The notes: a model not told the origin generated them from the sequence alone. DNA of 63,242 nt, filler included, from Octopus bimaculoides (GCF_001194135.2; 6 parts of 6 records of this genome joined end to end with filler, not necessarily neighbours in it), one strand, 5' to 3'. Positions 37,028 to 60,997 are shown, counted from the whole stretch's first letter. Numbers and translations: made by a program.

Positions 37028-38562
37028 AGGGGATTTAACAGATCGGANNNNNNNNNNNNNNNNNNNNNNNNNNNNNNNNNNNNNNNNNNNNNNNNNNNNN
37101 NNNNNNNNNNNNNNNNNNNNNNNNNNNNNNNNNNNNNNNNNNNNNNNNNNNNNNNNNNNNNNNNNNNNNNNNNNNNNNNNNNNNNNNNNNNNNNNNNNNN
37201 NNNNNNNNNNNNNNNNNNNNNNNNNNNNNNNNNNNNNNNNNNNNNNNNNNNNNNNNNNNNNNNNNNNNNNNNNNNNNNNNNNNNNNNNNNNNNNNNNNNN
37301 NNNNNNNNNNNNNNNNNNNNNNNNNNNNNNNNNNNNNNNNNNNNNNNNNNNNNNNNNNNNNNNNNNNNNNNNNNNNNNNNNNNNNNNNNNNNNNNNNNNN
37401 NNNNNNNNNNNNNNNNNNNNNNNNNNNNNNNNNNNNNNNNNNNNNNNNNNNNNNNNNNNNNNNNNNNNNNNNNNNNNNNNNNNNNNNNNNNNNNNNNNNN
37501 NNNNNNNNNNNNNNNNNNNNNNNNNNNNNNNNNNNNNNNNNNNNNNNNNNNNNNNNNNNNNNNNNNNNNNNNNNNNNNNNNNNNNNNNNNNNNNNNNNNN
37601 NNNNNNNNNNNNNNNNNNNNNNNNNNNNNNNNNNNNNNNNNNNNNNNNNNNNNNNNNNNNNNNNNNNNNNNNNNNNNNNNNNNNNNNNNNNNNNNNNNNN
37701 NNNNNNNNNNAGGAAAAAATATTAAGCTTCCGGGGGACGTAAATCTCAAATGGGAAATGTGGTGTAAAAAAAAGAATATCTATTCACTTCCAACGGAATT
37801 CAATCTCAAAAGGGAAAATGTTGTAGTGATATATATATTACCACGCCTTTGTGAGTAAAAGGTGGATTTGACCAACTGCTATAAAAGATAAGGCCTTGTG
37901 CCTAAAATAGAAAAGAATAAATGTCCTCTCTATTTCTTGTATCTATTCAGCTACTAATATCGGTAAGGAAAGACTAGGCAATGAATCGATGAACAGGTAC
38001 TTCAGGGATACGTCTCATACCAGTAGAAAGTTATGCATTAGTACACATACGGCAATTTGGAGAATGCTAACGAGTATTATTAACAGTAATCTCTGCTGGA
38101 CCTGCGATAAACGTGTCACATTTCAGCCGGAAGGCCGTTGCTGAATATTTCTCGTTGTGAGATTTAAAAATAACGATTCTTCATTGTGTCATATTTCTTT
38201 TGAAGGCATCACATATGGTATTAAGAGCTGCTGAAAAATGTCAAGGTACTTCAGCATCATGCGTAACGACATTGTCGCCAAAACAATATACAATGCAATG
38301 CAGAAAGAAAACATCCTCTGCCACGTATGGAGAAACCCCTGTTTATTGAATGCATACATAGACACCAGTACAAGGAATACTGGTGGAAAATTAGCATAAA
38401 AAAATCTGCCAGTTTTAAGATAACGTGCCAAGCTCTAAACATAAAGCCGGACGAAATGCCTCTAAGTATTTTATCCAGAGTGCTAACGATTCTGCCAGCT
38501 TCCTCGCATTGTCAATACTAAATTAATTACATTTATAAGAGATGTAAAAATGTAGGTCTTAC

Positions 38563-38623
38563 CTGTCAGTTACATTACTCAAACTTACATAATCTCCTAT
38601 ACGTTGATGGAAAGGAGCGACAT
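38563..38623 (-). CDS. Cys-rich precursor gene, copy 1: middle exon (YVAPFHQRIGDYVSLSNVTD)
   Basis: It has the same acceptor as copy 2 (gtattttaatatctctttcag) and the donor GACAG|gtaaga. The exon is 61 nt (55+6), phase 1 to phase 2, with no stop codon. The last exon of this copy is not visible. Confidence 0.75.
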
Positions 38624-39584
38624 CTGAAAGAGATATTAAAATACATATGGAAGCATTGGATGTCTATTTACCACAGTTTTGTGTAGAAATACACAGAATA
38701 CTCAGGAAGCACTCAACAGATAATTCATTGAATAGAGGAGAATGTATTTAAGATAACACCATCTGAAACAAGATGGAGGATCATGAAGACTGGAACTCAG
38801 CGTTTCCTCACTCAGACACTTAATATGGCTGATCTCTGTTGTGATGGATATTTTTAATACATAAAGGAGGGGATAAAAACCAATGGAGCAATAAAAAGGA
38901 ATGACTAGAAAAAACAAACAAAAAACACATGAAACATTATATATAGCACTTGCTGATTCTATTCTGTAATTATTTTAGTAATTAAGAATCCTTAAAGCAG
39001 CAGCGAACTGGCAGAATCATTAGCTCGATGTTGACTTGTCTACGTACTCGTAAGCTAGGGACCAATAAGAAGAAGTACCAGACTTAAAAATGAGAAGTAC
39101 TTGGATCGATTTGTTCCACCACCAAATACTTAAATATAGGAATAAAACGAAAGCTGTAACGATGTTCAAAATTCTACCACCACAACCGACTGGAAAAGAA
39201 ACAAATCTGTTATGTGGTGAATGCGCATGGCCTAGTGGTTAGGGTGTTGTACTCACAATGGTGAGATATTATTTTCAATTCCTAGACCTGGTGGTGCGTA
39301 GTGTTCTTAAGCAAAGCAATTCGTCTCACGTTGCTTTGCAATCACATCGACACATGACTCGTTCATGTCTCGTCGATTTAATGGAGAGAGTGAGATAATA
39401 TAAAGAACATACATTTATTTGAACATGATAGACAAATAGTTTTGTGCAAGGCGTTCGGTGAGACCTGAAGGCTCGTACATCGTCTTCGACGGGAGGATCC
39501 CCCATATGGAGAAATGATTGACTACAAAGGGATTCTTAAACAACAGCTACTAATACACAAAACAATATATTCTTCTCTCCTCTA

Positions 39585-39785
39585 GGCCCCAGGCCCGAAA
39601 TCTTTTGGGAGGGGGCTAGTCGATTAGATCGACCTCAGTACGTAACTGGTATTTAATTTATCGACCCAGAAAGGATGAAAGGCAAAGTCGACCTCGGCAG
39701 AATTTGAACTCAGAACGTAAAGACAGACGAAATACCGCTAAGCATTTCGTCCGGCGTGCTAACGATTCTGCCAGCTCGCCGCCTT
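39585..39785 (-). mobile_element. SINE family B, well-preserved
   Basis: Reverse complement of aaggcggcgagctggcagaatcgttagcacgcc...gagttcaaattc...gtcgactttgcctttcatcc. Other minus-strand copies lie at 42330-42478 and 62555-62700. Confidence 0.85.
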
Positions 39786-40109
39786 ACAAAACAATATATT
39801 AGATGGTTATTGGCAGAAATGATTATAACAACTAGTTCTATAAATCGTGAAAAGTAGAAAACATATGAGTTACTATAAAACTAAGGAATGTCTTTCTGCG
39901 GTACACAAAACGTATTAAAGTGAGTGCAAGGACAGAGTAAACAGTTGGATCTTATACACATTATGTCTGTCAAAGACAGCTGGAAGTTTCCATAACGAAA
40001 TCGACTATTATCAAATGTTAACTGGATCTTGACTGTCTTTGAATAAACCCACAACTGCAATAAATGTTTTTAGAAGGATCCAGACTTACGGCACCGGCTG
40101 AAAACCGAG

Positions 40110-40385
40110 TGTCACCGCCCGTAAAGCCAATGAAAGAAAATTCAATAATGATGCTATTAGACAAACATTTCCCAGTAGGGCATAAATATAAGAAATTATT
40201 CAATAAACATTCTGTTAAACTATCATAAAAGATATTATAAACCTCAACAGCCATCAAGAGGTGAGCGGCGGCTGTAATTTCCGTAAGGCGGAGTGCTGCC
40301 CATTGGATCAACAATGTTTAACAAAATACATTGTATACGAAGCAGAAGTCCCAGCACACAACGGAAATTCAAACACATATCACTG
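40110..40385 (+). mobile_element. Penelope-like fragment (linker and start of GIY-YIG)
   Basis: LLDKHFPVGHKYKKLFNKHSVKLS ... CNFRKAECCPLDQQCLTKYIVYEAEV. Confidence 0.7.
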
Positions 40386-40717
40386 CTAATACCAGTAGTG
40401 GCGGTACCAACACCATTCTGCTTTGATATAGGAGTAACAGATTAGATCGTACCACCTGAATTCTTCCCAATTTCTATATGAAAGATTAGTCAAAGTGTTA
40501 ATTAAATGTTATATGTTTTATAGAAGAAGCGTACTTCCGTATACATGGTCTAAGCGTATTATATAAGAAGAGAGTTATTTATTTGAAAGCTCTAATTGCA
40601 TATAAATCTGCTGAATTAGCGTTATTCCTTTCTCCCCTTTCCACCTTTCTATTTCCCCCTTTTCTTCACTACATTTCAGATGACTATAAATTGAAAGAAA
40701 TTTCTAATTCTACTTAC

Positions 40718-40781
40718 ATTGTTTATCCGAGAAGGTGTATGAGATGAATACACAAAACAATAGGACACTGATTCCCTTCAT
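40718..40781 (-). CDS. Cys-rich precursor gene, copy 1: signal-peptide exon (MKGISVLLFCVFISYTFSDKQ)
   Basis: tatatttctctatcctcag|GTGCGTT ATG ... AAA CAA T|gtaagt, phase 1. It differs from copy 2 by 4 substitutions and one in-frame 3-nt indel. Confidence 0.8.
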
Positions 40782-43107
40782 AACGCACCTGAGGATAGAG
40801 AAATATAACAACGAGAGTCATTAAAAAACGGAAGCTTTTTTTCTTACAAAGAAGCAAAAGTCTACAGCTGAAATGTAGGTAACAATTCATTTTCAGCTAT
40901 TCAAATTTATTTCACTGAAAATCCAATCTTTACGACATGATCAATCAAACAATTAATAAACAAGGTAAAAGAGATGTGGCCAATCAAAGGAAACGTGGCG
41001 GAGAACAATAACAAAAAATCTAAAAAGCAGAGGGTTAACAATGGAACAAGCTGTCAAGGGTAATTTCAGTGATGGAAGGTGGGACGACATTGCTGTCTCC
41101 TTAAGTACCACAAGGCACAATGACAACCGAATGAATGACTGAAACAATATAGCTAAGTTAATTGTACCAATACTACTGATATGAAAATATAATTTAGGTG
41201 AAGATGATGTCTTCGAAGCATTTATCCGTTAATATTCTCCATAGTGTTAACAGTGAATGAAAAGTTTTTACTTCAAGTATATCTGGCTTCTATAATTATA
41301 TCATTGTTATTTCTGTCACGGTGGAATTTTGTATGTGAAATGTACACAGTCAAATATATTTTCTTTATTTCCTCTAACCGAAACCAGTTTCACTGTATAT
41401 TTAATTAACATGTTGCATTGGTATCTAACACCATACCTGAATAAGCATAATTGTCTGTGGCTTAAACGTCATATGGTCCTCGCACAAACAATTATGTAAT
41501 CAACATCCTTTAAAATGCAACACTTACCCCCACAATTTCGGGCCTTGTGCCTAAAGTAGAAAAGAATAAATGTCCTCTCTATTTCTTGTATCTATTCAGC
41601 TACTAATCTCGGTAAGGAAAAACTAGGCAATGGACCGATGAAGAGGTACTCCAGGAGTACGTCTCATACCAGTAGAAAGTTATGCATTAGTACACATACG
41701 GCAATTTGGAGAATGCTAACGAGCATTAACAGTAAACTCTGCTGGACCTGCGATAAATGTGTCACATTTCAGCTGGAAGACCATTGCCAACCTGGAACTG
41801 GAACATATCGATTTTGTTCTTCCTGTGGGGAAGTTTTCGGTAATTCTCCAAAAATTTTTCTGGTTTCTTCATTATCTTTTAGACATGGCACGGTTGCTAC
41901 NNNNNNNNNNNNNNNNNNNNNNNNNNNNNNNNNNNNNNNNNNNNNNNNNNNNNNNNNNNNNNNNNNNNNNNNNNNNNNNNNNNNNNNNNNNNNNNNNNNN
42001 NNNNNNNNNNNNNNNNNNNNNNNNNNNNNNNNNNNNNNNNNNNNNNNNNNNNNNNNNNNNNNNNNNNNNNNNNNNNNNNNNNNNNNNNNNNNNNNNNNNN
42101 NNNNNNNNNNNNNNNNNNNNNNNNNNNNNNNNNNNNNNNNNNNNNNNNNNNNNNNNNNNNNNNNNNNNNNNNNNNNNNNNNNNNNNNNNNNNNNNNNNNN
42201 NNNNNNNNNNNNNNNNNNNNNNNNNNNNNNNNNNNNNNNNNNNNNNNNNNNNNNNNNNNNNNNNNNNNNNNNNNNNNNNNNNNNNNNNNNNNNNNNNNNN
42301 NNNNNNNNNNNNNNNNNNNNNNNNNNNNAGTACGCAACTGGTACTTAATTTATCGATCCCCGAAAAGATGAAAGACAAAGTCGACCTCGGAAGAATTTGA
42401 ACTCAGAACGTAAAGACAGACGAAATACCGCTAAGCATTTCGCCCGGCGTGCTAACGTTTCTGCCAGCCCTCCGCCTTAAAATTGCTCAAATATCATTGT
42501 ATGGAGGAGAGGTTTGATGCATGTGAATGTCTCGTCTCAAATTCAGACAATGAGGACATCTTTTGTAAACTATTGAGAAATGTATAAATCGCTAATATCC
42601 AGCCAAAAGTGAAATTTTGTAAAACATTCCGGTTATCTTCTCTCTTTGCGGATAGCCGGACTGTACACATGCAAACATGCAACAAGCATCAAGCTCTACC
42701 ACTACCACTACCACCATCATCACTACCATAGCATACTCAGTCTATTGTTATTACTTAATCACATACAGCCACAATGAATAATTTAAATGTTACATACTTG
42801 TTAGATTCGAACGGTATTTATATAAAGAGAGCTCAGTAGACTTTCTCTTGTGTAAAATTCAAACTGGTTGATGAGGGTTGTGTAGTGTTTCTTATTCAGT
42901 GAACAGCTTTAAACCTTGCTTGCTCCAGCTTGTGCTTCTTTCTGTCTTTCTGAATTTACTCTCACAAGAGATTCGTCTTTTTGTTCACACACATACACAC
43001 ACTCGCACACCACACACACATTTGCACATGCATACATACATACATACATACATACATACATACATACATACATACATAATACATACATACGTACGTACGT
43101 ACATACA

Positions 43108-43143
<36 letters not shown>

Positions 43144-44099
43144 TCACGGGCATGGTTTATGCGATGTGACTTACCATTTACTGACACTTGCAGTTCCACA
43201 GCTGTCGAGCTACACATATCAGAACAATAGATGCGCGTCAAGAAGTTTACAGATTTCCACACGATGTTAGTTTACTGATTGTTGAATAACCAAAAATCCG
43301 ATCATAACATCTCTACGTAGCACAGCTTACACTGGATTCAAAACTGCATGATGGACGGGTTTTTACGACTTAGTTCCTCGGCTGATAGAAGAATAAAAGA
43401 AGATATAGCAATAAATAATATTGGCCAGGTATAACTAATCAACCAGCGCTGTAGTTGTTATGTCTCTACTTGTTGCCAATGATTAATGTATCTTGTATCA
43501 GTTTCTATGTTTTATTATTGTTTCGTTGCGATCCGGCGGCATCTGTTGCAAGCTGAGCAAAATGGTGAGCGGGTTTCCTCCGCCCTCACTTTCTGAGTTC
43601 GAATCCACCGATATCTATTTTGCTTTCCGTCCTTTCCCAATCGGTAAAATAAGTACCAGTTTTGTGCTGGGGTTGATGTAATTAGATATCTAATACCATT
43701 TTCGCTACATTCTGTATATATTTCTAGTAATGTTCGCAGCCACTTCAAAATGGCTGTCCGTTCGAACGGACTTTACTGTGATTTATTAAGTCCATGAGAA
43801 CATCTCTTCTAGCTGGTTAACGATGCGCAGTAGCATCCGAGATATTGCGAGCGGGGGAGCAAACCCATACCACCTTCTAACGTTAGGACCAGCAGACCAG
43901 CCTGGTTTCGGTCTCTTTCTGCCTCATTTCAGTACTGGACACCTCCTCTGTCTCGTTTATCTATGCCCCCAATATTAAGAGCATCCAATTTAGACCCCTA
44001 GGCCACAGGAAGAGCCAGGATCTTGATTCCGATCTAGGGACTGCAACAGATGCCCGGTGGGAGGCCACTGCGAAATCAAAGAGGTTGTCTATAAAGCCG

Positions 44100-44700
44100 A
44101 AGTACTAGTAAATCCTAGCAATACCCCCGGTAGAAGCAGTAGCAGCCATACACAAGAACAGAACCAGCAACACCGCCACCATCGCCACAGTTAACAACAT
44201 TAGCAACATTAGCAATAACAGCACCAGGGACAGCATTGCTAGTTCACCCGACGACATCAACAGCAGTAACAACAATAGTATCACCATCAGCACCAGCATT
44301 ACCAAACAGCTTTCCTAACGTCCACATTAGCAGACCTGACAACCCCTATAGCAGCAACAGCAGCAGCAGGTCCAGTGGCACCGCCAGCAATAACGGCAAT
44401 AATGGCAGCAGTGACAACAGCAGAAGCAGCGACATTGGTCCTGGCAGAAACACCGGCAGAACCACAGCTGATGACACCTCTAGCAGCAATGGAAACTTTG
44501 CCACCACCGACGAGGACCACAATAAAAACAATAGCGCCTTCACCCTAACGGACAGTGGCGATACTGCTACCGACGTCACCACCTCCTCCAGCTACGCCAA
44601 CACCAGCAGTCCCGCACCAACAACAGCAATGTTGACGGCAGCATCAGCATCAGCATCAGCGGCAGCAGCAGCAGCAACAACAACAACACCAGAAGGTACA
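44100..44700. repeat. Degenerate CAG/CAA/CAC trinucleotide low-complexity tract
   Basis: Long imperfect cagcaa/cagcac periodicity that leaves ORFs open on both strands. Confidence 0.75.
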
Positions 44701-44899
44701 GCTCCGACAACACACGCCTACGGAGAAACAATGGATATTCCGCGAACGGAATTTCAAGCAACGTCTCTCCAACCAAATTTCAGGCCTTGTGCCTATAGTA
44801 GAAAGGATTATTATTATTATTGTTATTATTATCATTATTATCATCATTCCTAATAATTAATTATTTCATATTTTATTCCACGTATCTTAATATAATATT

Positions 44900-46560
44900 A
44901 TTGTAATTGAACTTTATAATACATATTTATATCTATTAAGTCATCCAAATTATATTTTGTCCTAGTTTTTATTTTATTTTTATTTGTACTTTTTAGTTAC
45001 AAATTCATAGTGCGTATATGCTAAACATTTTTTACGCTTACTGTTAAGAAGTTTGGGCTTAGATTTTAAAATTTGGAAGATTTCATCAATACAAATATCA
45101 CAACGCGCATTGGCTACTTTACAAGATATAGCATGGCGGATAATTTCCACCTTGAAGTTAAAATCCTCATTTTTGTCCTTTAATTCCCAAATAAAGTTGC
45201 TTTCACTGGTGCTAGTTGAGTTATTTTTGTTTCTAAATATGTTGTTTCATGATTGGCGATTCTTCACTTAATAAAATTTGCCGTGGAACCTATGTAATAA
45301 GAATTTGGTCCCTCAGATTCTACTTTGCATCTACATACCACGTTTTTCTGTTTGCAAAGATTATTAAGCGGAGTGTTATCTTTAAATTTGCAATCATAAT
45401 GAGTATTTTTATCTTTCTCTATAATTCTGTGGTCAATACTAATCTTGTCCATAGCGTTAGTTTTTTCCCTTATAATTCCATGGTTAAAATTAGATTACCT
45501 ACCTTTCTCCACTGTGAGAACTAATTTCTTGCGCATTAGAATTGGAAATAATCTGGTTACTGTTTGAGATATTATTATTGCACATGCATCTATTATTATA
45601 GAAACTGTTCAATTTTTTGTTATTTAGTTAATAAATGATCTGAGAAACATTAATTGAGACGGAAAAAGCAAATTTAACTAATCCCGTGTTAATTCTCTCA
45701 TGAAACTTATTTTCTTGAATAGAATATTTGGAGATAATTTTGTAAAATGATTTGATTTAAATTACTTTTAATTTGTTTAGCGAATGGCATTACCAGCCAT
45801 AAAATATTGATTTTATTAGAATCTTTATCATAATGATTTATTTCTGGGTTAATTACATTTATAAATAGGTTATGCTGTTTAGTTTATTTTTATGAATTTT
45901 ATTATCAAGGCTTTGCGTATGAATTGTATTATCAAGGCTTTATTGACTCTAACTCCATTTATTTATTTATGTATTCAGAATTATTAATGTTATAAATGTT
46001 GTTATAATATAAAGCTGTAGGCTGTTTGCATTTATGATTAATTTTTAGATTTATCTGCTCTGTATTATTATCGTTCATACTGGACTAGAATTCAGCGTGT
46101 AATATTTTATTGTTATTTAGTGTATATTTATTAAAACCATAATGTTTATTCTGCCTTGAGTATTTAGAATTTTGGTCGCTCATAATTTTATCCAAGTTAT
46201 TCCTATTACTGTAGTTATTGCTCGGTTCGTAATATTTTAACGCTTGTTTATAACCAGCCTTCCTAAGTGCCAAGTTATAATAATCTTCATTAACGTTGAA
46301 AATTTCCTCATTCGGTGAAAGATACGAAATTCTTCTTGAAATATTCCAAATCCAAGAATTTGTGACAAATCTAGGATGATTACTTCCTACATTTATACAC
46401 CTTGGGTTGGCGTTAAGTTTATGGTAGGATTTATGCTTCCCAGTGACAAGGTTTAGTTTCACCCGATCGTTCATCAGGTGATTCTTCTTGTGTCAGATTT
46501 TCACTCCGAGGAAATATTTAACTCGCTATTTCAAGATGCGATTTTTAATTTATTAACTTG
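44900..46560 (-). mobile_element. Second Penelope-like retroelement, degraded
   Basis: INVGSNHP...NISRRISYLS..FN...YYNLALRKAGY (46085-46474), PLNNLCKQKNVV...YYIGST (45264-45452) and IIRHAISCKVANARCDIC near 45080-45150. Confidence 0.8.
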
Positions 46561-48184
46561 TAATTGAACAAGTTGAGTATGGAAACGGATGTGAGTAGCA
46601 GAGAATCTCGACATTATGTGAAATTGAATTTTATCAGTTAAAACTCTCCATTTCCTCTTTATTTTATATACATATATATATATNNNNNNNNNNNNNNNNN
46701 NNNNNNNNNNNNNNNNNNNNNNNNNNNNNNNNNNNNNNNNNNNNNNNNNNNNNNNNNNNNNNNNNNNNNNNNNNNNNNNNNNNNNNNNNNNNNNNNNNNN
46801 NNNNNNNNNNNNNNNNNNNNNNNNNNNNNNNNNNNNNNNNNNNNNNNNNNNNNNNNNNNNNNNNNNNNNNNNNNNNNNNNNNNNNNNNNNNNNNNNNNNN
46901 NNNNNNNNNNNNNNNNNNNNNNNNNNNNNNNNNNNNNNNNNNNNNNNNNNNNNNNNNNNNNNNNNNNNNNNNNNNNNNNNNNNNNNNNNNNNNNNNNNNN
47001 NNNNNNNNNNNNNNNNNNNNNNNNNNNNNNNNNNNNNNNNNNNNNNNNNNNNNNNNNNNNNNNNNNNNNNNNNNNNNNNNNNNNNNNNNNNNNNNNNNNN
47101 NNNNNNNNNNNNNNNNNNNNNNNNNNNNNNNNNNNNNNNNNNNNNNNNNNNNNNNNNNNNNNNNNNNNNNNNNNNNNNNNNNNNNNNNNNNNNNNNNNNN
47201 NNNNNNNNNNNNNNNNNNNNNNNNNNNNNNNNNNNNNNNNNNNNNNNNNNNNNNNNNNNNNNNNNNNNNNNNNNNNNNNNNNNNNNNNNNNNNNNNNNNN
47301 NNNNNNNNNNNNNNNNNNNNNNNNNNNNNNNNNNNNNNNNNNNNNNNNNNNNNNNNNNNNNNNNNNNNNNNNNNNNNNNNNNNNNNNNNNNNNNNNNNNN
47401 NNNNNNNNNNNNNNNNNNNNNNNNNNNNNNNNNNNNNNNNNNNNNNNNNNNNNNNNNNNNNNNNNNNNNNNNNNNNNNNNNNNNNNNNNNNNNNNNNNNN
47501 NNNNNNNNNNNNNNNNNNNNNNNNNNNNNNNNNNNNNNNNNNNNNNNNNNNNNNNNNTATATATATATACAAAATTTTGATTTAAAAAACTTTAACGATA
47601 TTATAAACTATAAAGATTAATAATTAATCAAATATTATTAATCAAAAATAATCGAAAATATATCAACACTATTCAAATCGAAGTTCTAATATTATGTTGA
47701 AATGAAACTATAACTTCTAAATAATTTAGTGTTAAATAAGTTATCTATTAAAAAACCAAATGAATAGTATAAAAACAAGAATACATATTATTTTCAAATA
47801 GTAGAAAATCTTTAGCAAAGTGAAAACAGTACTTATCCAAATATATATGTATATATCAAAAAATTGATTAATGTGATGAGGTTCAATATTACTAATTGAT
47901 GTGGCTCGAACACCTGTGTCGAGCAATAATAAGTCGTAACTAGAATAACTCATTTCAAACAATATCAAATTTATGTTTTCAGTTATGTCAATGTTCCTCA
48001 CTGAACGTCAGAGCAACATCTGCGTTTCAAGAAATTAGGCTACAGATATCTGAAGAAGTAATGTCAGGTTGTAACATCTCTTTTCAACATATCTTAGCCA
48101 GGGTTTCAAACAATTACTGTATGGTGGATAGATTTTATGACTGATTATTTCTAATACGTTCCGGTATTTCTTCTTGATATTTTC

Positions 48185-50110
48185 CCAGTCAGTTTACGAG
48201 TTTTATCGTAATATGCCGGACTTGTTCGGGCCCATACCGGCCAGCGTCCACACAAACTGACCACAGAATGGGAGGATTACCAGCTCCGTGAGTTGGGGAG
48301 TGGTGACGTTGATCAGAAAGGACCCGAGAAAGGGGGATATTATAAGTAACTTCAGGCCCATAATTCTACCCAATGTAGAGTTAAACATTTTGGCCAATGT
48401 GTTAGCCAAAAGGTTGACGCGTGTCGTGGAGAAACTTGTAGGGAAGGCGTAGTCATGCGCCATCCTAGACAGGTCTATTCAGGACAATCTTCACCTCTTG
48501 TCTTCACCTTAGGTAGGGTGGGTAAATCCAGGACAATCTTCACCTCCAATTTTCACCTTAGATAGCGTGAGTAAATTTACCGGCAAAGGTGGGGGCACTG
48601 GTCCATTTAGACCAAAGTAAAGCTTTCTATAGGGTAGACCACTAATACCTGGCGGCGGTCCTCGAAGCGGCTGAGCTGGGCACGGATTTCCGTGGTTGGA
48701 TCACTGCCATTTATAGCGGCATCAAATCCACCGTCCAGATAAACGGTTACCTGTCGGAGCCGTTTCAGATCAAGCGCTCGGTTCATCAAGGGTGTCCGCT
48801 GTCTCCATTTCTGTATGTGATGGCTCTTGAGCCATTACTGTGCAAGTTGGAGAATTTGGGGGTGCATCCCCAATGAAATCGGATGCGGCAAGTCTGTCTC
48901 TGCTTATACAGATGACGTCACCATCACCGTGTCCAATGAAGCCCAGCTACCTTGCGTAGAGGACGCTATTAAAGGATACGAGGCGGTGGCAGGGGCAAAA
49001 GTTAACAAGGACAAGTCGATTGGCTTGCTCCTCAGCACCTGGAGGAGTAAGTCGATATCGTCCAGTGTCGTGGGTCACTGGACAGATGATCCTGTTAAGT
49101 TGCTCGGAGTTTGGTTAGGACCAGACTCCCAGACGGAGAAGAATTGGAGCGAGGTGGCAGACAGGGTTGAGGCTCTAGTCCGGACTTGGTCTGGAAGGGC
49201 TTTGTCCCTGAAAGAAGGGCGGGAGTGGTACAGGTGTTTATTGCATCTGTTATCACCTACCGCTTAACCGTTGTCCCTTGCCCCGATTCGTGGCTAAGCA
49301 AGATGGAGCGCCTTCTCTTCCGCTTGTTGTGGAAGGGAGGAAAGTCACTTGTGAGGCGCTCCGTTTCCTGCCAGGAACCGCTAAAGGGTGGGTTAGGGAT
49401 GCCCTGGTTAATGATGCGCAGACATGCACTGAGGCCAAAGGGATATCTGGCTCTATCTGGAAGGTGACCAGGTGTGGAATCGGCTGGTGGAGGAATTCTT
49501 TCCGCGACCAGCCTCCTTGGAGAGAGTTAAAAAAGAGTGTCGTCAGGCACTCATGCTAATCCACAAGGCGGGCAAGGCCGGCAGTGGGAATACCACCTCA
49601 GTTTTGTATAAAGGGCTGGTAGAGTTAAAAAATGATGACGTCTTAGGAGGGGCTCTGGGGTTCGATGAGAACCAACTTGCCAACCTGTTCCGAAATCTTT
49701 CAGGCCGGGGTATTTGGATAATTACCAAAGACCCCTGGCCTGGCAGTGCTACAGCAATGCTTTACCTATTCACGATAAATTGTCAAAGCACAGAATGTCA
49801 GTGGCAACGGCATGTCCAAGATGTGGGCTGGACGATGAAACCGTCCAGCAAGCTCTTGTACAGTGCTGGGAGCTTTCAGGCTTGATAATTTACGTAGAGC
49901 ACATTTTGTAACACCTAGGCAGAATACAGCTATCAGCTGAGTCTATAATAAAGATTGTACCGCCAACCGGACTCTCAAAGGAAAGTGAGGCATATTTTCT
50001 ATATACAGTTGCAGTGTTGAAAGAGTGTGTGTGGAAGACCAGAATGCAAGGACTCGTGACGGGATCCTTCACTACTAGCCGAACAATTATTCTGTGCTGA
50101 TGAAGGGAAA
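48185..50110 (+). mobile_element. Tx1/L1-clade LINE ORF2 remnant (RT and C-terminal zinc finger)
   Basis: YEFY, NFRPIILPNVELNILANVLAKRL, VHQGCPLSPFLYVMALEPLL, SAYTDDVTI, VKLLGVWLG and ALPIHDKL...CPRCGLDDETVQQAL. Many frameshifts. Confidence 0.85.
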
Positions 50111-50760
50111 TAACCCGGAAATCGCGACACACAGATATTGTTTTGAGCTGAGTGGGGGTGCTAGATTCCCTTGTTCATAAATATAAGGACACAGATCATG
50201 TCGTATAGCCAGCTGGAGACGATTTATCCTGGGGTTACAGCAACATTCATCCTAAATTAGAACTGCTATGTTATGTCGGTAATCTTTATTCCAATATAAC
50301 TAAATGTTGGATTATTCTATTTATTGTACTAAATAATTATGTACTATTATTTTTTATAACCTATTTTCAAATTTCCTAATTATTAATTAATAATTAAGAA
50401 AAGGGAATTTTTTTAAAGTGCCAAAAATTATTTTAAATGAATTATTTTTTAAATTTTTAATAGAATTAACAAGTAATAAGAAATAGAAGTAGTAACTTGT
50501 AATAAAAGTTTTAGTTTTTATAAAAGCTAATATTTTCTAAATCTAAATATTTTATTTGAAAATTTATCCCTTAGCTGCAATATTTTAAGTAAAAATTTTC
50601 TTGTTCTGTACTCTACCAAATCTAATAACTTGTCCTGAACTTTTCCGGGTTTATAATCTTAAGAATATTTCTTTCGTTCGCATTTTCCATGTAATAAATA
50701 TATATAAAGTCAGTCGCCACTTCAAAGTGTCTGTTGAATGTTACTACTAGTTTAAACGCA

Positions 50761-51070
50761 GGTGGATTCTCCACCAGCTGGATTCTCCACCAGCTGGATT
50801 CTCCACCAGCTGGATTCTCCACCAGCTGGATTCTCCACCAGCTGGATTCTCCACCAGCTGGATTCTCCACCAGCTGGATTCTCCACCAGCTGGATTCTCC
50901 ACCAGCTGGATTCTCCACCAGTTGGATTCTCCACCAGCTGGATTCTCCGCCAGCTGGATTCTCCGCCAGCTGGATTCTCCACCAGCTGGATTCTCCGCCA
51001 GCTGGATTCTCCGCCAGCTGGATTCTCCGCCAGCTGGATCCTCCACCAGCTGGATTCTCCACCAGCTGGA
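50761..51070. repeat. 16-bp minisatellite, about 19 copies of CTCCACCAGCTGGATT
   Basis: Counted directly. Variant units (ctccgccag) cluster in the right half. Confidence 0.95.
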
Positions 51071-51776
51071 TATCAGTGTAACACTCTGCACTCTTTATAT
51101 ACAATATATTGTTAGCAGGGGTGGGGGAAGAAACCCTAACTACCCTCAAGCAGCTAACAGAATCTGCGGGCATATAACTGCGGGCGCAACAAACCACACT
51201 ATTTGTTCTGGGGTATGTAGCCCATCGCCCTCTGCACCTCCATCTTCTACTGCTTTACCACACGCTTCTTTTCTCTCGTTGCTCTACTTATATCTCTGCT
51301 TCCTGCTTCTTTGTAATTAAATGTTATAAAATAGAACTTGGAGAATACTTCTCGTTGCAATAATGCAGTGTGACACTGCAATGTAAAATTTTATCATCCA
51401 TATCCATAACTTAAAGGCGAACACAACAGCGAAGAACGAAGCACTGAGATTTTGTTACCGTTCAATAAAACAAAGAACACAGCGAAGAGTGAATCACTAA
51501 GTATTTGTCATTGTTAAATAAATTTATTTAATTGAGATTTCAATAAAATTTGACGTATTATTAGCATAAATATATTAGATATTGAATACGTTGGTCGTAT
51601 TAATTTAGGGTTGTTAGAAAACTCATAGTTGTAGATTATGGTTTACAGACTTTCTCTTCTTTTACCATTTCTGTTCTTGGTGCAACATACGTGAATTTCT
51701 TTCCAGGAAAAATTACAAAATCATTAATGTTCGTTAACATTCTATATTTCACTATGTCTCTTGATGTTTATTCATA

Positions 51777-51782
51777 GATTTC
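51777..51782 (-). promoter_or_regulatory. Candidate poly(A) signal (AATAAA) of the Cys-rich gene
   Basis: Plus-strand tttatt reads AATAAA on the minus strand, about 300 nt after the stop codon. Confidence 0.35.
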
Positions 51783-52078
51783 TACTGTGATAGGATTTGA
51801 CGATTTCTTAAATTTCAAAATTGAAAATGTAGTAGTAGTAGTATTAATAGTTGTAGTTGTAGCAGTTGTAGAGGGAGTAGGAGTAGTAGGAGGATGTAGA
51901 GAAGCAGCATCAGTAACAGCAACAACGCTTATTGATGTTCTTGTCATAGTTGAGTTTACTTTTGTTGCTTGTCTGGCCCCCTTTGCTTTGTTTGTTTTTG
52001 TGATCTCATTGATTTTCCCCTCGTATAAAACAGTCTAACGTATGTATTTGCATCCTCAAGATTCACCAGAGCAGAACG

Positions 52079-52298
52079 TCAATAAGATGGTAAATTTACA
52101 AGAAAAATCAGGAAAGCGATTACAGTTTGGCATAAACCGTTATTAGCCTCATGGATCATATTTTTTGAATTACAAGAGCACCTAAATATAAAATTACATT
52201 CACATGAATAACCAGAGCAGCAAAAAGGGCGATTTACATAGTTGTAAGAGTAGCAGACCCCCGTTGAACATGGAACATAAGGTGTCGTGTCTTCGTTA
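52079..52298 (-). CDS. Cys-rich precursor gene, copy 2: last exon (knottin/agatoxin-like 8-Cys domain plus hydrophobic tail)
   Basis: The acceptor is tattctgtatttgcag|T AAC GAA (phase 2). It encodes (S)NEDTTPYVPCSTGVCYSYNYVNRPFCCSGYSCECNFIFRCSCNSKNMIHEANNGLCQTVIAFLIFLVNLPSY*. The Cys spacing is C-x4-C-x10-CC-x4-C-x-C-x5-C-x-C. Confidence 0.75.
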
Positions 52299-52695
52299 CT
52301 GCAAATACAGAATATAGTTGGAAATAACAAATAGTATTAAATTATGTTTCTCATTAAGAGAGAAGGCAAAGAATATATAGGGGGAAGGGATCAGATGGTA
52401 CTGATGTCTTTTTTTAATCGACGGTGATATAACTAGAGAATATGAGGGGAATTGAACGCACAATATGCAGAACCGAAACAGGTACGACTAGTCCTATTTT
52501 TCTATTCTTTTAACAATTACTAACTGTGTTTTCTCGCATGTCTTAACAAGTAAGTATATAAATTTCTATCCAGAATTTTACAAGTAGATTTAAACAGTGA
52601 CAAAGGAATTAATAAATAAATATTGCTAATAGTTAGAGGGGAGGTAACAAGTAGAATATTAACGTTCGTCAGTTAATATTTGTAACAAATATGCA

Positions 52696-53174
52696 CAATA
52701 TTCCCTCGCCATATAGCGGTTTACCTATCGCGCATGCAGTACATCGCGGTTCACATATCGCTCAATCAGTACATCGCGGATTTTTCTGGCTAATATATGT
52801 AAATTGATATCGCGGACTCCTCAGAATATCGCGGATTTCTGCGGCCGATAGGTATTCATGTTTTGTTTTAATATTTTAATTATTTGTGTGGTAAAATAAG
52901 CATTTTCACGCCTAAAAATTAATGAATTAATAAATAACAATACAGTACAGTAGTGCACTGTATAACACATTAAGTAAAATACATTAAAAGAAAACACGTA
53001 TGGAAAACGAAACTCGATAGGAGAGTGTGTGGTGTTGTTTTGCATTTATAATAATATAAATATATACAAATTATAGAAATGATAAAAATTATAGTACTGT
53101 ACAGTTTCTACTTTGCAGTACTTTCTCTCAACGCGGCAGGTTTTAGAACACACGCGATAGTCGAGGGATTACTC
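52696..53174. mobile_element. pogo/Tigger-like MITE
   Basis: Imperfect TIRs caatattccctcgccatatagcg and cgcgatagtcgagggattactc, plus internal atcgcgg repeats. Confidence 0.65.
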
Positions 53175-53229
53175 CATATTAATTAGATGTGTCTACTTTT
53201 AAATTCCCCGGATAGTTTTCGATTAATAT

Positions 53230-53930
53230 CAGATATGTTGATCCTCTATATTCAAATTATGGTCGCTATTTTGACGTAATACGGAGCAAGTAAATGAAAT
53301 AAAGAGTATATTGTGCAACGTTGTCCGTGAATTGCCTGTCACATTGGAGGAAAGAAAAATTAAAGCAGAGACAGAAGAATTTACCACGAAAATGAAAAAA
53401 AAAAAAACAAGATCAGAAGAAACAAATAAAAATGCATGTTGCTGGACGTAACACAATTTCGAACTTTTATTCGATATGTGATAATGTGCTTATGTATGCA
53501 CAGAGGGTCGCAATGCCAGTCTCGCTACAAAATCGAACGTTGAAGTAATTCAGCACTGGACATCCAGGAACTTCTACAATGAAGTCACGTATGAAGAATT
53601 ATGTTTACTGACGAAAATGGATCTAGATGTTGAGAAGTTGGTAAAATCCTGCCGAGGTTGTGCTCTTACGGATCGTAAAATTATGTACATGGTGAAATGT
53701 TCAAAATAGGAACATACAAGGTACAGGAATCAGCAGAAAAGGAGGTTTGCTGAAGGAAAGAAGTACTCATGGCGGTTCTCTACGATATTTTTGATGTGCC
53801 AACACCGCTCAGAAATCGTCGGACCAAGGCGTACCAAAACAAGAAAAATAAAACATATGGAATTGCTGGAAGAAGTTCCCGAAGGAAAAAATATTAAGCT
53901 TCCAGGGGACGTAAATCTCAAATAGGAGAT
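53230..53930 (+). mobile_element. Gypsy pol remnant (integrase zinc-binding region and C-terminal piece)
   Basis: EIKSILCNVVRELPVTLEE; FSICDNVLMYAQRV; GHPGTSTMKSRMKNYVY*..MDLDVEKLVKSCRGC. Its end is duplicated at 37711-37890. Confidence 0.7.
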
Positions 53931-55197
53931 GTGATGTAAAAAAAGAATATCTATTCACTTCCAACAGAATACAATCTAAAAAGGAAAGATGTTATGGTGA
54001 TATATATTACCACACCTTTGAGATTAAAAGGTGGATTCGACCAACTGATATAAAAGCTAAGGTGTCTCGTTCAAAAGAAAAAAGGAAAGTGTTGGAGTTT
54101 CGCGTGTTGGTAGCAGGAAGTTACGTCTGTGAATATATTGCTTTACCCCCGTTTCGTTAAAATCATATATCCACAACAAAGGGTATACAACATCCTGTTT
54201 GAGAGATGTAAACGAGGTTTCCGAAAGAACAAGCAAAAATATTCTCTTTCTTGACAATACTGTTCAGAACGAAAGACCTTAACCTTTATATGGTCTTAAA
54301 TTCTGCCTACACTGGTTTCTCTGTCTTTGTGAGAAAAACGATTTTCTTGGGTCGTTGTTTCATGTCATCTGATAATGATGGAGAGTAATGCCAGTCTACG
54401 ATCCTTAAGATCGTCAAGTAGTATAGCATGTTACATTTGTGTATATCGTGTTGGTTAAATTAACCCAAATACAGGCCTTGTGTGCTTCGAGTTACACAAA
54501 CTAATGACTAGTTAATACAACACACCACTGGGTTTGTAATAAGCTTCCATCTCAGTTCGGAGGTTCAATGACTTTAACAAAATAGCTAAACATGATAGTT
54601 TCCCTTAATCATATTCTATTTTGAATTGAATGTAATTTATTCCAATATGAGAACAATATAAATTCATTTCATTTCTGCATTCTTTCATACTAAAGAAGAA
54701 AACATTTGACTAAAGTGTTTCCCTCATCTAATTAAAATACGAGTAGAAAGAAGCTACATTTCAAAGTTTAGCAAACCTGAAATCTATCAGCTCATAGATG
54801 AAAGGTGCTAGGCTCGGATGTTAAAATTCTCTGCTATCTAAGATTCAGACATAAATTTCGAACCAAGCTCAATGAAAATCACTATTATGTATATTAAAAA
54901 GCTGTCTGGGAGGTCATATTGACACGCAACGAATCTTGTAGCCCAGAATGAAACCAGAGAGTTGGCAGAAAATTATAGGCCCACTAAACACACGCTGTCA
55001 CAAACTATTCCTCCAATAGCATTTCCAGTCAAAGATGTGGTGACTGATGAGCAGGAAGGTGGAAAAAGGCAAGAGCGAGGATGGGTGCAACAACTTTTCA
55101 TAAACAAACCTGTACTCTTTGAAGCGAAAAAAGGTAAAACGCAAGAGTCTTGCAGCAGTATGTCTTGATAGTGGGGAACGCAGTTCCTCATTATTCT

Positions 55198-55346
55198 TTT
55201 ATTCTTTTACTTGTTTCAGTCATTTGACTGCGGCCATGCTGGAGCACCGCCTTTAGTCGAGCAAATCGACCACAGGACTTATTTTTTGTAAGACTAGTAC
55301 TTATTCTATCGATCTCATATTCCAAACCGCTAAGTGTTGGGGGACA

Positions 55347-55394
<48 letters not shown>

Positions 55395-55420
55395 AACACA
55401 CAGACACACACAGACACACA

Positions 55421-55458
<38 letters not shown>

Positions 55459-55580
55459 ACGGGCTTTTTTTAGTTTCCGTCTACTAAATCCACTCATAAG
55501 GCTTTGGTCGGCCCGAGGTTAATGTAGAGAGACACTTGCCCAAGGTGCCACGCAGTGGCATGCTACTTACCGCCCAGCCA
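55198..55580 (-). mobile_element. SINE family A
   Basis: Reverse-complement copy in the intron of the Cys-rich gene copy 2. It is absent at the equivalent position in copy 1. Confidence 0.8.
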
Positions 55581-55949
55581 CTCTTTGAAGACATCACATA
55601 TAGTATTAACAGCTGCCGAAAAATGTCAAGGTACTTCCGCATCATGGGAAACAACGTTGCTGTCAAAACACTATACAATGCAATGCAGAAAGAAAAAACA
55701 TTCCCTGCCATGTATGCAGAAATCCCTGTTTATTGAATGCATACATAGACATCAGAACAAGGAATACTGGTGGAATATTAGCATAAAAAAACCTGCCAGT
55801 TTTAAAATAACGTGCCAAACTCAAAGCATAAAGCCGGATGAAGTGCCTCTAATTATTTCATCCAGAGTGCTAACGATTTTGCCAGCTTCCCCACCTTGTC
55901 AATACTAAATTAATTACACTAATATGAGATGTAGACACGTAGGTCTTAC

Positions 55950-56004
55950 CTTGTATTCCTCCTATGTGCATGATGTCTTCTCCTTAGATCGATGGTAGCG
56001 ACAT
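55950..56004 (-). CDS. Cys-rich precursor gene, copy 2: middle exon (DVATIDLRRRHHAHRRNT, basic pro-region)
   Basis: gtattttaatatctctttcag|ATGTCGCT...AATACAAG|gtaaga. The exon is 55 nt, phase 1 in and phase 2 out, matching both neighbouring exons. A paralog at 38563-38623 has the same phases. Confidence 0.8.
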
Positions 56005-56181
56005 CTGAAAGAGATATTAAAATACATATGGAAGAATTAGATGATCATTTACCAAAGTTTCGTATAGCGCTCATCAGATAAATCATTGAACAGAGGATAA
56101 TGTATTTATGATAACACCATCTGAAACAAGATGGAGGATCATGACAACTGGAACTCAGCATTTCCTCAGTGAGAGACGTAA

Positions 56182-56404
56182 CCCATTAAGTCCCAGAGTA
56201 CTTAAATTTCTGAATATTACTTTTAAATTTTACAGTTGATAGAAAATAGGTTGAAATGAAAAAAAAAAATTATTAAAACTCCTTTACTTCAAGTAGAAAT
56301 GGAAATACTCGGTGTCCTATAAATAGGACACTGCGACAATGTGATACAGCTTATTTAATGTTCTCATTTAGTGTCCTATTTATAGGACAGTGGGACTTAA
56401 TGGG
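56182..56404. mobile_element. piggyBac-type MITE (223 bp) in an intron of the Cys-rich gene copy 2
   Basis: Perfect 14-bp TIRs cccattaagtccca / tgggacttaatggg, flanked by (g)TAA and TTAA. The paralog has an empty single TTAA site at 38820-38823. Confidence 0.85.
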
Positions 56405-56574
56405 TTAATATGGCTCATCACTGTAGTGATGGATATTTTTAATACATAAAGGAGATAAAAACCAATGAAGCAATAAAAAGGAATGACAAGAAAACAAACA
56501 AAAAAAGACACATGAAACATTATATATAGCACTTGCTGATTCTCTTCCGTAATTATTTTATTAATTAAGAATTC

Positions 56575-56780
56575 TAAGGCAGAAACATTAGTACGCCGGG
56601 CGAAATACTTAGCGGCTTTTCGTCTATTTTCATGCTCTGAGTTCAAATTTCGCTGAGGTCGACTTTGCCGTTCATCCTTTCGGGGTCGATGAATTAAGAA
56701 CCAGTTGCGTACCTGGGGTTGATCTAATCGACTGGGCCCCCTCCCCCAAAATTTCGGTCCTTGTACCTGGAGTAGAAAAG
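56575..56780 (+). mobile_element. SINE family B
   Basis: Head, core and tail are recognisable. Confidence 0.75.
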
Positions 56781-57190
56781 AATAATTATGAATTCTGAAG
56801 GCGGCGGCGAACAGGCAGAATCGTTAGCTCGACAGACAATATTCTTCGTGGCATTTTCGCCAGTTCTGCTCTGATATAGGAGTAAGAAATCAGATCACAC
56901 CACTTGAATTCTTCCCGATTTCTATATGAAAGATTAATCGGTCATAGTGTTAATTAAATGTTATATATTATAGAGAAGAATCGTAATTCCGAATATTTCA
57001 TCTATGCGTAGTGTATATTAGAAGAGAAGTATTTATTTGAAAGCTCTAATTACATATAGATGGTGTACATCTGAAAGACCGCTGAGGTGATATTATTCAT
57101 TTTCCTCCTTTCCGCCATTCTATTACCCGCTTTTTCTCCCACTACATTTCAGTTGACCATAAATTGAAAGAAATTTCTAATTCTACTTAC

Positions 57191-57251
57191 CTTGTTTACC
57201 CGAGGTGTATGAAACGAATACACAAAACAATAGGACACTGATTCCCTTCAT
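57191..57251 (-). CDS. Cys-rich precursor gene, copy 2: first coding exon (signal peptide MKGISVLLFCVFVSYTSGKQ)
   Basis: The minus strand reads tatatttctctctcatcag|GTGCGTT ATG AAG GGA ATC ... AAA CAA G|gtaagt. This gives a strong acceptor (exon starts at 57258), a canonical donor and a phase-1 end. The peptide has a basic residue followed by a hydrophobic core. A paralogous exon lies at 40718-40781. Confidence 0.85.
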
Positions 57252-57489
57252 AACGCACCTGATGAGAGAGAAATATAACAACGAAAGCCATTAAAAACGG
57301 AAGCTTTTTTTCTTACAAAGAAGCAAAGGTTTACAGCTGAAATTTAGGTAACAACTATCATTTAGCTGTTTGAATTTATTTCACTGAAAATCCAATCTTT
57401 ACGACATGATCAATCAAACAATTAGTAAACAAGGTAAAAGAGACGTGGCCAATCAAAGGAAACGTGGCGGAGAACAATTACAAAAGATC

Positions 57490-57860
57490 TGCCCCTACGT
57501 TCTGAGTCCAAATTCCGCCGAGGCCGACTTTGCCTATCATCCTTTCGATGTCGATTAAATAAGTACCAGTTACGCACTGGTGTCGATATAATCGACTTAA
57601 TCCGTTTGTCTGTCCTTGTTTCTCTCCTCTATATTTAGCCCCTTGTGGGCAGTAAAGAAATAAGAAAGGTTAGCACGCCGGGCGAAATGCTTAGCGGTAT
57701 TTCTTCTGTCGTGACGTTCTGTGTTCAAATTTCGCCGAGGTCGACTTTGCCTTTCGTCCTGTCAGGGTCGATAAATTAAGTACCAGTTACATACTGGTTC
57801 GATTTAATTAACTGGTCCCCTTCCCAAAAATTTCGGGCCTTGTGCCTAAAGTAGAAAAGA
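57490..57860 (+). mobile_element. Two stacked SINE family B copies
   Basis: The core gaggtcgactttgcct..catcc is repeated at about 57520 and 57738. Confidence 0.75.
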
Positions 57861-59081: not shown

Positions 59082-59115
<34 letters not shown>

Positions 59116-60043
59116 NNNNNNNNNNNNNNNNNNNNNNNNNNNNNNNNNNNNNNNNNNNNNNNNNNNNNNNNNNNNNNNNNNNNNNNNNNNNNNNNNNNNN
59201 NNNNNNNNNNNNNNNNNNNNNNNNNNNNNNNNNNNNNNNNNNNNNNNNNNNNNNNNNNNNNNNNNNNNNNNNNNNNNNNNNNNNNNNNNNNNNNNNNNNN
59301 NNNNNNNNNNNNNNNNNNNNNNNNNNNNNNNNNNNNNNNNNNNNNNNNNNNNNAAAGAAGATATAACAATAAATAATATTGACCAGGTATAACTAATCAG
59401 CCAGCGCTGTAATTGTTATGTCTCTAATTGTTGCCAATGATTAATGTATCTTGTATCAGTTTCTTTGTGCTATTATTGTTTCGTGGCGATCCGGCGGCAT
59501 CTGTTGCAAGCTGAGCAAAATGGTGAGCGGGTTTCCTCCGCCCTCACTTTCTGAGTTCGAATCCACCGATATCTATTTTGCTTTCCATCATTTCCCGATC
59601 GATAAAATAAATACCAGTTTTGTGCTGGGGTTGATGTAATTAGATATCTAATACCATTTTCGCTACATTCTGTATATATTTCAAGTAATGTTCGCAGCCA
59701 CTTCAAAACGGCTGTCCGTTCGAACGGACTTTACTGAGATATATTAACTCCATGAGAACATCTCCTCTAGCCGAATAACGATGCGCAGTTGCATTGGAGA
59801 TATTGCGAGCAGGGGAGAAAACCCCTACCACCTTCTAGCGACAGGACCAGCAGACAAACCTGGTTTCGGTCTCTTTCTGCCTCACTCCAGTACTGGACAC
59901 CTCCTCTGTTAGAGATGGCGGTAGCTCGCTTCTGCTCGCAATAGATAGCTTTAAGGATAGAGAGGGTAAATTGACAACAATTGTTCAGTGGTGGCCTTTC
60001 CATCGCAAAGAAACACTCACACACACACGCAGATACGCGCGCG

Positions 60044-60966: not shown

Positions 60967-60997
<31 letters not shown>

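Follow-up and report, generated by a model that had tools for sequence, protein, structure and literature searches.

Background

Three-exon conotoxin superfamilies are known for conserved introns, exon-specific rates of evolution and indels in multiples of three (PMC3862624). The locus described here, from another mollusc, Octopus bimaculoides, is built in a comparable way: as in the M, O and T superfamilies of conotoxins, a signal, a pro- and a mature Cys-rich part are laid out on three coding exons. It belongs to a window of 63,242 nucleotides (the whole stretch of DNA analysed, filler between its pieces included), on which all positions are numbered; adding 29,167,401 to a window position gives the position on chromosome CM046622.1 (GCA_001194135.2). 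Two adjacent genes were compared, LOC128250514 (copy 1, c1) and LOC128250517 (copy 2, c2), both on the minus strand, with a further paralogue, LOC128250513 (c3), situated just upstream of copy 2. Genes of this family consist of a 5' exon, a signal-peptide exon, a short propeptide exon and a last exon, which encodes a Lys-Arg (KR) site, a core of eight cysteines and a hydrophobic tail.

The pro-region of conotoxins is usually conserved or intermediate in its rate, whereas in the octopus family the pro exon of one paralogue is an extreme outlier. The propeptide exon was rewritten on the copy 2 branch only, where its rate of change was about five times that of the adjoining DNA. That positive selection at the protein level remodelled the pro-region of copy 2 and moved its convertase site is likely but not proven, since part of the similarity of the introns comes from gene conversion and constraint.

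Divergence of the propeptide exon between the two copies

The propeptide exon (exon 2 of the coding part) is bordered by tttcag/ATGTCGCT...GACAG/gtaaga in copy 1 (38623 to 38563) and by tttcag/ATGTCGCT...ACAAG/gtaaga in copy 2 (56004 to 55950), slashes marking exon borders. The two versions differ at 19 of 55 aligned nucleotides (35%), in addition to a 6-nt in-frame indel. The initial annotation of the locus, based on a codon alignment, had counted 12 of 14 codons changed in amino acid and 17 of 42 nt different, with the in-frame indel and no stop, and a recount on the minus strand gave the same figures.

Its claim that the exon is far more diverged than the introns and the signal exon was borne out by pairwise alignment. 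Differences were found at 61 of 541 nt (11%) in the immediate flanks (Fisher p = 2e-5 for the excess in the exon) and at 269 of 2900 nt in the other aligned paralogous DNA (p = 4e-7), the divergence of paralogous intron and flank being about 10% over some 2.9 kb (2955 aligned nt). Among 2570 sliding windows of 55 nt compared between the copies, the propeptide exon was the most diverged. Considered by part, divergence was 10-14% in introns, 7% in the signal exon, 26-36% in exon 2, about 33% in exon 3 and 25-28% in the flanks of exon 3. The approximately 30 nt of acceptor-side intron reported as identical belong to a 38-nt perfect match, made of 30 intronic nt and the first 8 nt of the exon. In the signal exon, for which "only 4 substitutions" had been given, the four substitutions are present, together with a 3-nt in-frame indel.

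Polarity of the change and rates on the copy 2 branch

Copy 1 had initially been described as having lost the RRR/RR sites, and this polarity is reversed. At the nucleotide level, one exon sequence (type A) is common to c1, c3 and the further paralogues c4-c7, copy 2 being the sole departure. The corresponding propeptide consensus, xVxPxHQQxGxYVSLSxxTx/SDxIKR, is also found in the members from O. vulgaris, and only copy 2 differs from it. Copy 1 has both the propeptide motif and the KR at the start of exon 3 (YVAPFHQRIGDYVSLSNVTD/SDKIKR); copy 2 has neither (DVATIDLRRRHHAHRRNT/SNED) and is a family member on all other features. As the copy 1 version is the family consensus, it is copy 2 that gained basic sites.

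Where c1 disagrees with the outgroup c7, the base of copy 2 is that of c1 at nine sites and that of c7 at one, which indicates that its exon descends from a c1-like sequence; 14 of the 41 sites that are invariant among c1, c3 and c7 are altered in it. In relative-rate tests using c7 as outgroup, 1 change was assigned to c1 and 15 to c2 in the exon (p = 5e-4), versus 8 and 14, respectively, in 200 nt of alignable flanking intron. Expressed as a rate on the copy 2 branch, this corresponds to 15/55 (27%) in the exon and 14/200 (7%) in the flanks (p = 1.3e-4). The changes of the copy 2 exon comprise 17 nonsynonymous and 2 synonymous ones, giving proportions of changed nonsynonymous sites (pN) and synonymous sites (pS) of 0.40 and 0.17, and this pN exceeds the flank rate of 0.07 (p about 3e-7).

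Selection, mutation or relaxed constraint

Positive selection is favoured by the asymmetry between branches, by a pN above every neutral estimate at hand, i.e. the flank rate (0.07), pS (0.17) and a value of about 0.13 per branch derived from the divergence around exon 3, and by the directional gain of Arg and His, to which 7 of the 14 replacements in the copy 2 exon lead, giving LRRR and HRR. The preservation of the open reading frame and splice sites in copy 2, as well as of its 8 core cysteines and of an N-x-S/T sequon where the exon ends, is a further argument for it. In addition, the rewritten residues, which come from exon 2 and from the part of exon 3 that precedes the cysteines, adjoin each other in the protein although a 3.65-kb intron separates their codons in the DNA, which points to selection on the protein.

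The packing of 19 changes and an indel into 47 nt might also be the trace of a mutational burst, in which a few complex multinucleotide events, or a hypermutation targeted to the exon, rewrote the sequence without selection for the new one. Exon-targeted hypermutation has long been debated for conotoxins. A burst would be compatible with the skewed substitution spectrum given below and with the cysteine core of exon 3, where the synonymous rate (dS) among c1, c2, c3, c1b and c4 is 0.46-0.93, several times as high as in the tail (0.05-0.17; p = 0.02-0.04 for two pairs), a pattern that could reflect locally raised mutation as well as escape from homogenisation. However, in an affine-gap alignment of the exon the substitution-rich solution scored above those with indels or frameshifts, and a frameshift or indel account of the difference was rejected in favour of scattered single substitutions. 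Neither strand of the 66 kb of the cluster yielded a template for the new copy 2 sequence; since k-mer sharing there was only at chance level, a patch templated by nearby sequence was rejected as well. Frame and splice sites were preserved, and a remodelling that resumes at the beginning of exon 3, beyond the 3.65-kb intron, cannot be explained by a local DNA event. A mutational burst is considered improbable.

The history of the flanking DNA bears on a second alternative. The relationships between c1, c2 and c3 are mosaic, c2 and c3 being closest near exon 1 and c1 and c2 sharing the 5' flank and early intron 2. A nearly identical tract links c1 and c3 (Table 1), with 6 differences in 408 nt versus 16.5% further upstream in intron 1 (P = 4e-24); it ends 48 nt into exon 2, beyond which the two sequences diverge and intron 2 is unalignable. 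The tract results from a recent conversion event between paralogues that are not neighbours, copy 2 lying between them and being skipped. In the last ~170 nt of intron 1 (38624-38800 versus L007 9880-10053), c1 and c7, copies located 7 Mb apart, are 14% different, and about 23 nt beside the acceptor are identical in all copies. Such conservation at the end of intron 1 points to a splicing or regulatory element within the intron, or to homogenisation acting over a long range.

Under such concerted evolution, the pro-piece of copy 2 could have lost its function (e.g. after loss of the KR site) and drifted under relaxed constraint, so that beside homogenised introns the exon only looks accelerated. 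A conversion boundary inside exon 2 is demonstrated by the c1-c3 tract, the ~10% homology is confined to the 5' module (the 25-28% of the exon 3 flanks being near the 35% of exon 2), and conservation is higher in the flanking intron than at the synonymous sites of the exon, all of which fit this explanation, as does the comparison of nonsynonymous and synonymous changes within the exon given below. Yet the copy 2 exon is c1-like by descent (9:1) and shows a 15:1 rate asymmetry relative to c1 over equal time, with a pN that exceeds each of the three neutral estimates. Moreover, divergence jumps exactly at both exon edges, which would require two conversion tracts to spare just 47 nt, and the shift is a directional one to Arg and His, with reading frame, sequon and splice sites kept. 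Relaxed constraint was rated as unlikely.

Several points nevertheless weigh against positive selection. The exon has only 18 codons, and the comparison of nonsynonymous with synonymous changes inside it (17/42 versus 2/12 sites, p = 0.18) is not significant. Between c1 and c7, the synonymous sites of exon 2 are 41% different, more than the adjoining intron. The substitution spectrum is skewed (10 of the 19 changes remove T, with 12 transversions versus 7 transitions) and its product is purine-rich, and clustered multinucleotide mutation can mimic branch-specific selection. Cleavage at the RRR/RR of copy 2 is a prediction from the sequence. The main caveat is that the similarity of introns combines recency, gene conversion and constraint, so that the contrast between exon and intron is overstated; as a methodological caution, introns are no neutral yardstick in such families, because conversion and constraint keep them similar. 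The positive selection proposed in the initial annotation is therefore backed by the pN of copy 2 relative to the flank rate, not by the test within the exon, and the intron yardstick on which the former depends is imperfect.

Proposed relocation of the processing site

Throughout the family, the propeptide exon precedes the KR site located at the start of exon 3, and it is best read as a pro-piece upstream of this predicted cleavage site, not as active peptide. In copy 2, exon 3 begins with SNEDTT instead of the SDKIKR type of other members, the KR site being lost, and a new RR site stands near the end of exon 2; at most about 2 residues of the exon would therefore be kept on the mature peptide. 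The exon 2 segment was predicted as disordered by AlphaFold2, as expected for a pro-piece. The suggestion that this exon may be part of the active product is consequently not retained.

The events can be arranged as follows. The 5' modules (from the 5' exon to early intron 2) have stayed ~10% diverged through recent duplication and recurrent gene conversion, with splice-site constraint as an added factor. In the copy 2 lineage alone, the propeptide was rebuilt by some 15-19 point substitutions and a 6-nt deletion within 55 nt, nearly all substitutions altering the amino acid and half of them leading to Arg or His, which created RRR and HRR. The ancestral KR at the start of exon 3 was lost over the same period as the propeptide was rewritten. 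Under positive selection, convertase cleavage would thereby have shifted about 8 residues upstream, exposing a new N-terminus of the mature peptide. If true, the copy 2 exon would be a clean natural case of propeptide remodelling with relocation of a processing site, a route to a new mature N-terminus that leaves the knot untouched.

Gene models and assembly

For copy 2, the model with three coding exons gives a spliced product of 111 aa that matches the annotated "uncharacterized protein LOC128250517 [Octopus bimaculoides]" from end to end with 100% identity; for copy 1, the first 41 aa are the start of the annotated LOC128250514 protein. Splice contexts are identical in the three local genes (c1, c2 and c3). 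The signal exon (cag/GTGCGTT ATG AAG GGA ... CAA N/gtaagt) ends in phase 1 and the propeptide exon in phase 2; the phase-1 donor fixes the reading frame of the propeptide exon, which is confirmed by the exact identity to the annotated protein. Coordinates of the features are collected in Table 1.

A model in which the propeptide exon is the last coding exon (read-through to AGG TAA in both copies, with a conserved AATAAA ~220 nt downstream) was rejected, because the stop is automatic with a phase-2 AG/GTAAG donor and the spliced models equal the annotated proteins. Candidate third exons of copy 2 at 54195 (RMLYTLCCGYM...) and in the conserved block 53883-54062 were dropped in favour of the exon at 52298, a stop-to-stop frame from 52298 to 52079 that is Cys-rich, in the right phase and preceded by a strong acceptor (tgtatttgcag/T). 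It encodes, in this order, the pre-Cys segment NEDTTPYVP without KR, the 8-Cys knottin-like core and the hydrophobic tail QTVIAFLIFLVNLPSY. As a separate observation, a perfect cryptic donor (TAT/GTAAGT) lies inside the type A exon (window 38586-38600); it is kept in c3-c7 and destroyed in copy 2 (CATGCACAT).

Table 1. Features of the two gene copies, their homologous blocks and the conversion tract (positions in the window)
Feature	Position	Strand	Remarks
Copy 2 5' exon homologue, mostly non-coding	~61085-61148 (borders uncertain)	-	block 60958-61302 matches 47817-48151
Copy 1 5' exon homologue	~47959-48022	-	family 5' exon match
Copy 2 signal exon	57191-57258	-	acceptor cag/GTGCGTT, ATG 57251, phase-1 donor G/gtaagt; encodes MKGISVLLFCVFVSYTSGKQ
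Copy 1 signal exon	40718-40788	-	ATG 40781, donor T/gtaagt; encodes MKGISVLLFCVFISYTFSDKQ
Copy 2 intron 1	56005-57190	-	~10-12% diverged from copy 1; contains piggyBac-like element
Copy 1 intron 1	38624-40717	-	gap-free
Copy 2 propeptide exon (second coding)	55950-56004	-	55 nt; encodes (D)VATIDLRRRHHAHRRNT(S)
Copy 1 propeptide exon (second coding)	38563-38623	-	61 nt; family-consensus type; encodes (Y)VAPFHQRIGDYVSLSNVTD(S)
Copy 2 intron 2	52299-55949	-	gap-free
Copy 1 intron 2 start	37711-38562	-	homology to copy 2 stops at gap 37048-37710
Copy 2 third coding exon	52079-52298	-	acceptor tttgcag/T; TGA stop
Gene-conversion tract c1-c3	38576-38977 (L006 ~10430-10873)	-	2 differences in ~400 nt
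Collinear block	41528-41900 ~ 57823-58188		self-comparison
Collinear block	42512-43089 ~ 58414-59115		self-comparison
Collinear block	43396-43951 ~ 59354-59909		self-comparison
Collinear block	47817-48151 ~ 60958-61302		self-comparison

Self-comparison delimited two collinear units with 80-93% identity (~37711-43951 plus 47817-48151 versus 53883-59909 plus 60958-61302). Within intron 2, the copy 1 blocks 38199-38562 and 37711-37893 are ~10% diverged from 55584-55949 and 53883-54062 of copy 2, respectively. Runs of N occupy 37048-37710, 41901-42328, 46684-47557 and 59116-59353 in the piece of the window that carries both genes, and no reading frame crosses any of them. Location of the family 5' exon placed the gaps 41901-42328 and 46684-47557 in the first intron of copy 1, within the 5' untranslated region. 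The blocks on either side of each of these gaps are collinear with copy 2, so that order and orientation are supported, gap lengths not. The distance between two homology blocks is 3.9 kb in copy 1 and 1.05 kb in copy 2.

The annotated exon 3 of copy 1 was not found in the window because it lies ~7 kb beyond the edge of the piece. The annotated intron 2 of this gene is 10.6 kb long and spans four gaps, with another copy of the 5' exon in between, and LOC128250514 may fuse exons 1-2 of copy 1 to an exon 3 whose own gene is partly concealed by gaps. With so many gaps in the scaffold, a possibly chimeric copy 1 model and a ninth, unpaired Cys in the tail of copy 2, the difference between the copies could be thought an artefact of mis-assembly or of a mis-join near gaps, or copy 2 a decaying pseudogene. 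This is very improbable: no gap lies in or adjoins either compared exon, either signal exon or intron 1 of either copy, the copy 2 coding sequence (57251 to 52079) is entirely gap-free and equals the NCBI model, and collinearity extends across both copy 1 gaps. Copy 2 also has an intact reading frame and consensus splice sites, and its eight core cysteines are conserved, as is its tail.

The 66 kb around the window also contain further intact copies of exon 3, one pseudo-exon and, in the opposite orientation, at least two genes, and a second cluster of the family is located 7 Mb away. Outside the piece, in the annotated intron 2 of copy 1 and beyond it (L005 19094-19354, 21902-22120, 22869-23087 and 26534-27101), the extra 5' exon copy, three tandem intact exon 3 copies and a partial exon 2 near gaps were observed. 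Rfam and tRNA scans gave no match.

Repeats and mobile elements

A piggyBac-like miniature inverted-repeat transposable element of 229 bp (56179-56407) is inserted at a TTAA site in intron 1 of copy 2 and is absent from the same site in copy 1 and c3; its ends are inverted repeats of 24 nt (CCCATTAAGTCCC...GGGACTTAATGGG), and a perfect 20-nt hairpin lies between them. Intron 1 of copy 1 contains a specific insertion of ~1.4 kb (39000-40416), which includes a repeat resembling a short interspersed element. Copies of this repeat (~200 bp) occur in both orientations in and around the two genes (39568-39796, 42329-42482, 56578-56784 and 57488-57862), one of them abutting the gap 41901-42328. Between the 3' end of copy 2 and the 5' exon of copy 1, a 16-nt tandem repeat (CAGCTGGATTCTCCAC) extends over 50759-51071 (19.6 copies, 96% match). 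Degraded fragments of retrotransposons without long terminal repeats were detected at 48827-49885 (+) and 60314-60667 (-), with a weak RVT_1 match and nearest relatives in Logan/ENA contigs only.

The family and its knottin-like core

An exhaustive profile search against 1.84 billion representatives retrieved 7 proteins only, each of them uncharacterised and belonging to O. bimaculoides or O. vulgaris, and the literature search gave no paper mentioning the genes or motifs of the family. It thus appears to be an undescribed, Octopus-restricted tandem family of small secreted Cys-rich peptides. Its members LOC128250513/14/16/17/36/41 are annotated as uncharacterised. Full-length search with the copy 2 product matched LOC128250514 (E = 2e-21) and LOC128250513 (E = 2e-19), and further members were matched by profile search with E = 1e-34 to 6e-20.

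Eight cysteines are invariant in all aligned members (C-x4-C-x10-CC-x4-C-x-C-x5-C-x-C), which corresponds to the C-C-CC-C-C framework of knottins, or inhibitor cystine knots (ICK), plus an extra CxC...CxC pair. The match to Pfam Toxin_9 (PF02819) had E = 0.02 and 15.5 bits, under the gathering score of 21.3 bits, and all 11 matches of a PDB profile search were ICK toxins with E >= 0.14. AlphaFold2 models were of low confidence (predicted local distance difference test, pLDDT, of 57 in the model of the whole protein and 64 in that of the domain) and included a beta-hairpin at domain residues 27-41. The best Foldseek match of the domain model was ACTX-Hi:OB4219 (template-modelling score 0.52/0.64, match probability 0.95, E = 0.16); delta-palutoxin IT2 and tachystatins were the other top matches, all with E >= 0.16. 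As all these resemblances are below threshold, the core was called knottin-like and not assigned to Toxin_9.

The combination of conserved signal peptide and introns with accelerated exons had initially been taken as the hallmark of venom-peptide and immune-effector families. The family is indeed a secreted, Cys-rich, toxin- or effector-like tandem family, and its mature region is hypervariable around the eight invariant Cys, with a dN of 0.57-0.89 in the exon 3 core and a dN/dS ratio of ~2.9 between c1 and c1b, the youngest pair. It is exon 3, however, that is hypervariable, exon 2 being normally moderately conserved. The C-terminal segment ...SSQN.IH...NG..QTVIAFLIFLVNLPSY (52079-52160 in copy 2), which was modelled as a helix, is conserved in all paralogues and reads ...NNG-LCQTVIAFLIFLVNLPSY. 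This hydrophobic tail might be a glycosylphosphatidylinositol (GPI) attachment signal, a membrane anchor or a C-terminal pro-piece; since each member carries such a conserved GPI-signal-like tail, the peptides could be membrane-tethered. As the family is annotated only as "uncharacterized" and is unmentioned in the literature searched, it forms a ready candidate set for proteomics of octopus saliva, mucus and suckers and for ion-channel or antimicrobial screening.

Comparison with known systems

Conotoxins and the octopus family share intron conservation with exon-specific rates, a hypervariable mature exon with conserved Cys, point mutations and trinucleotide indels, and the raised dS of the octopus Cys core echoes that reported for conotoxin mature regions. 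On the other hand, neither the signal nor the pro-region resembled in sequence that of any conotoxin, all proteins retrieved in the exhaustive profile search being from Octopus, and the conserved C-terminal hydrophobic tail is an extra element of the octopus family.

Spider ICK toxins (mu-agatoxin/delta-palutoxin/ACTX-Hi:OB4219, PF02819) have a similar framework (C-C-CC-CxC-CxC) and spacing, but the octopus core scores below significance against them, and precursor organisation, tail and taxon differ; the resemblance may be convergent. The tachystatins of horseshoe crabs (antimicrobial, chitin-binding ICK peptides) would share a small secreted knottin-like fold, tachystatins A and B being among the top fold matches, on account of which an immune-effector role was kept as an option; no sequence or structure score against the octopus core was significant. 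With gene-converting tandem families that harbour islands of diversity, the locus shares mosaic paralogues, a conversion tract that makes two non-adjacent copies nearly identical, and short variable stretches spared by homogenisation. There, the island is a ligand-binding segment common to the whole family, whereas here it is the propeptide exon of a single paralogue. Exon-focused rapid evolution is thus clear at this locus and not unprecedented, and it is the gene family itself that appears undescribed.

A broader interpretation, in which an Octopus-specific knottin-like family diversifies in conotoxin fashion, its products act as tail-tethered endogenous toxin-like modulators or immune effectors rather than as classical venom, and copy 2 adaptively moved its convertase site, was regarded as doubtful when taken as a whole. 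If true, cephalopods would possess a tandem, lineage-restricted knottin-like arsenal, evolved independently of cone snails and spiders and obeying the same genomic rules: signal and introns are conserved, hypervariability is concentrated in exons, and the scaffolding evolves in concert.

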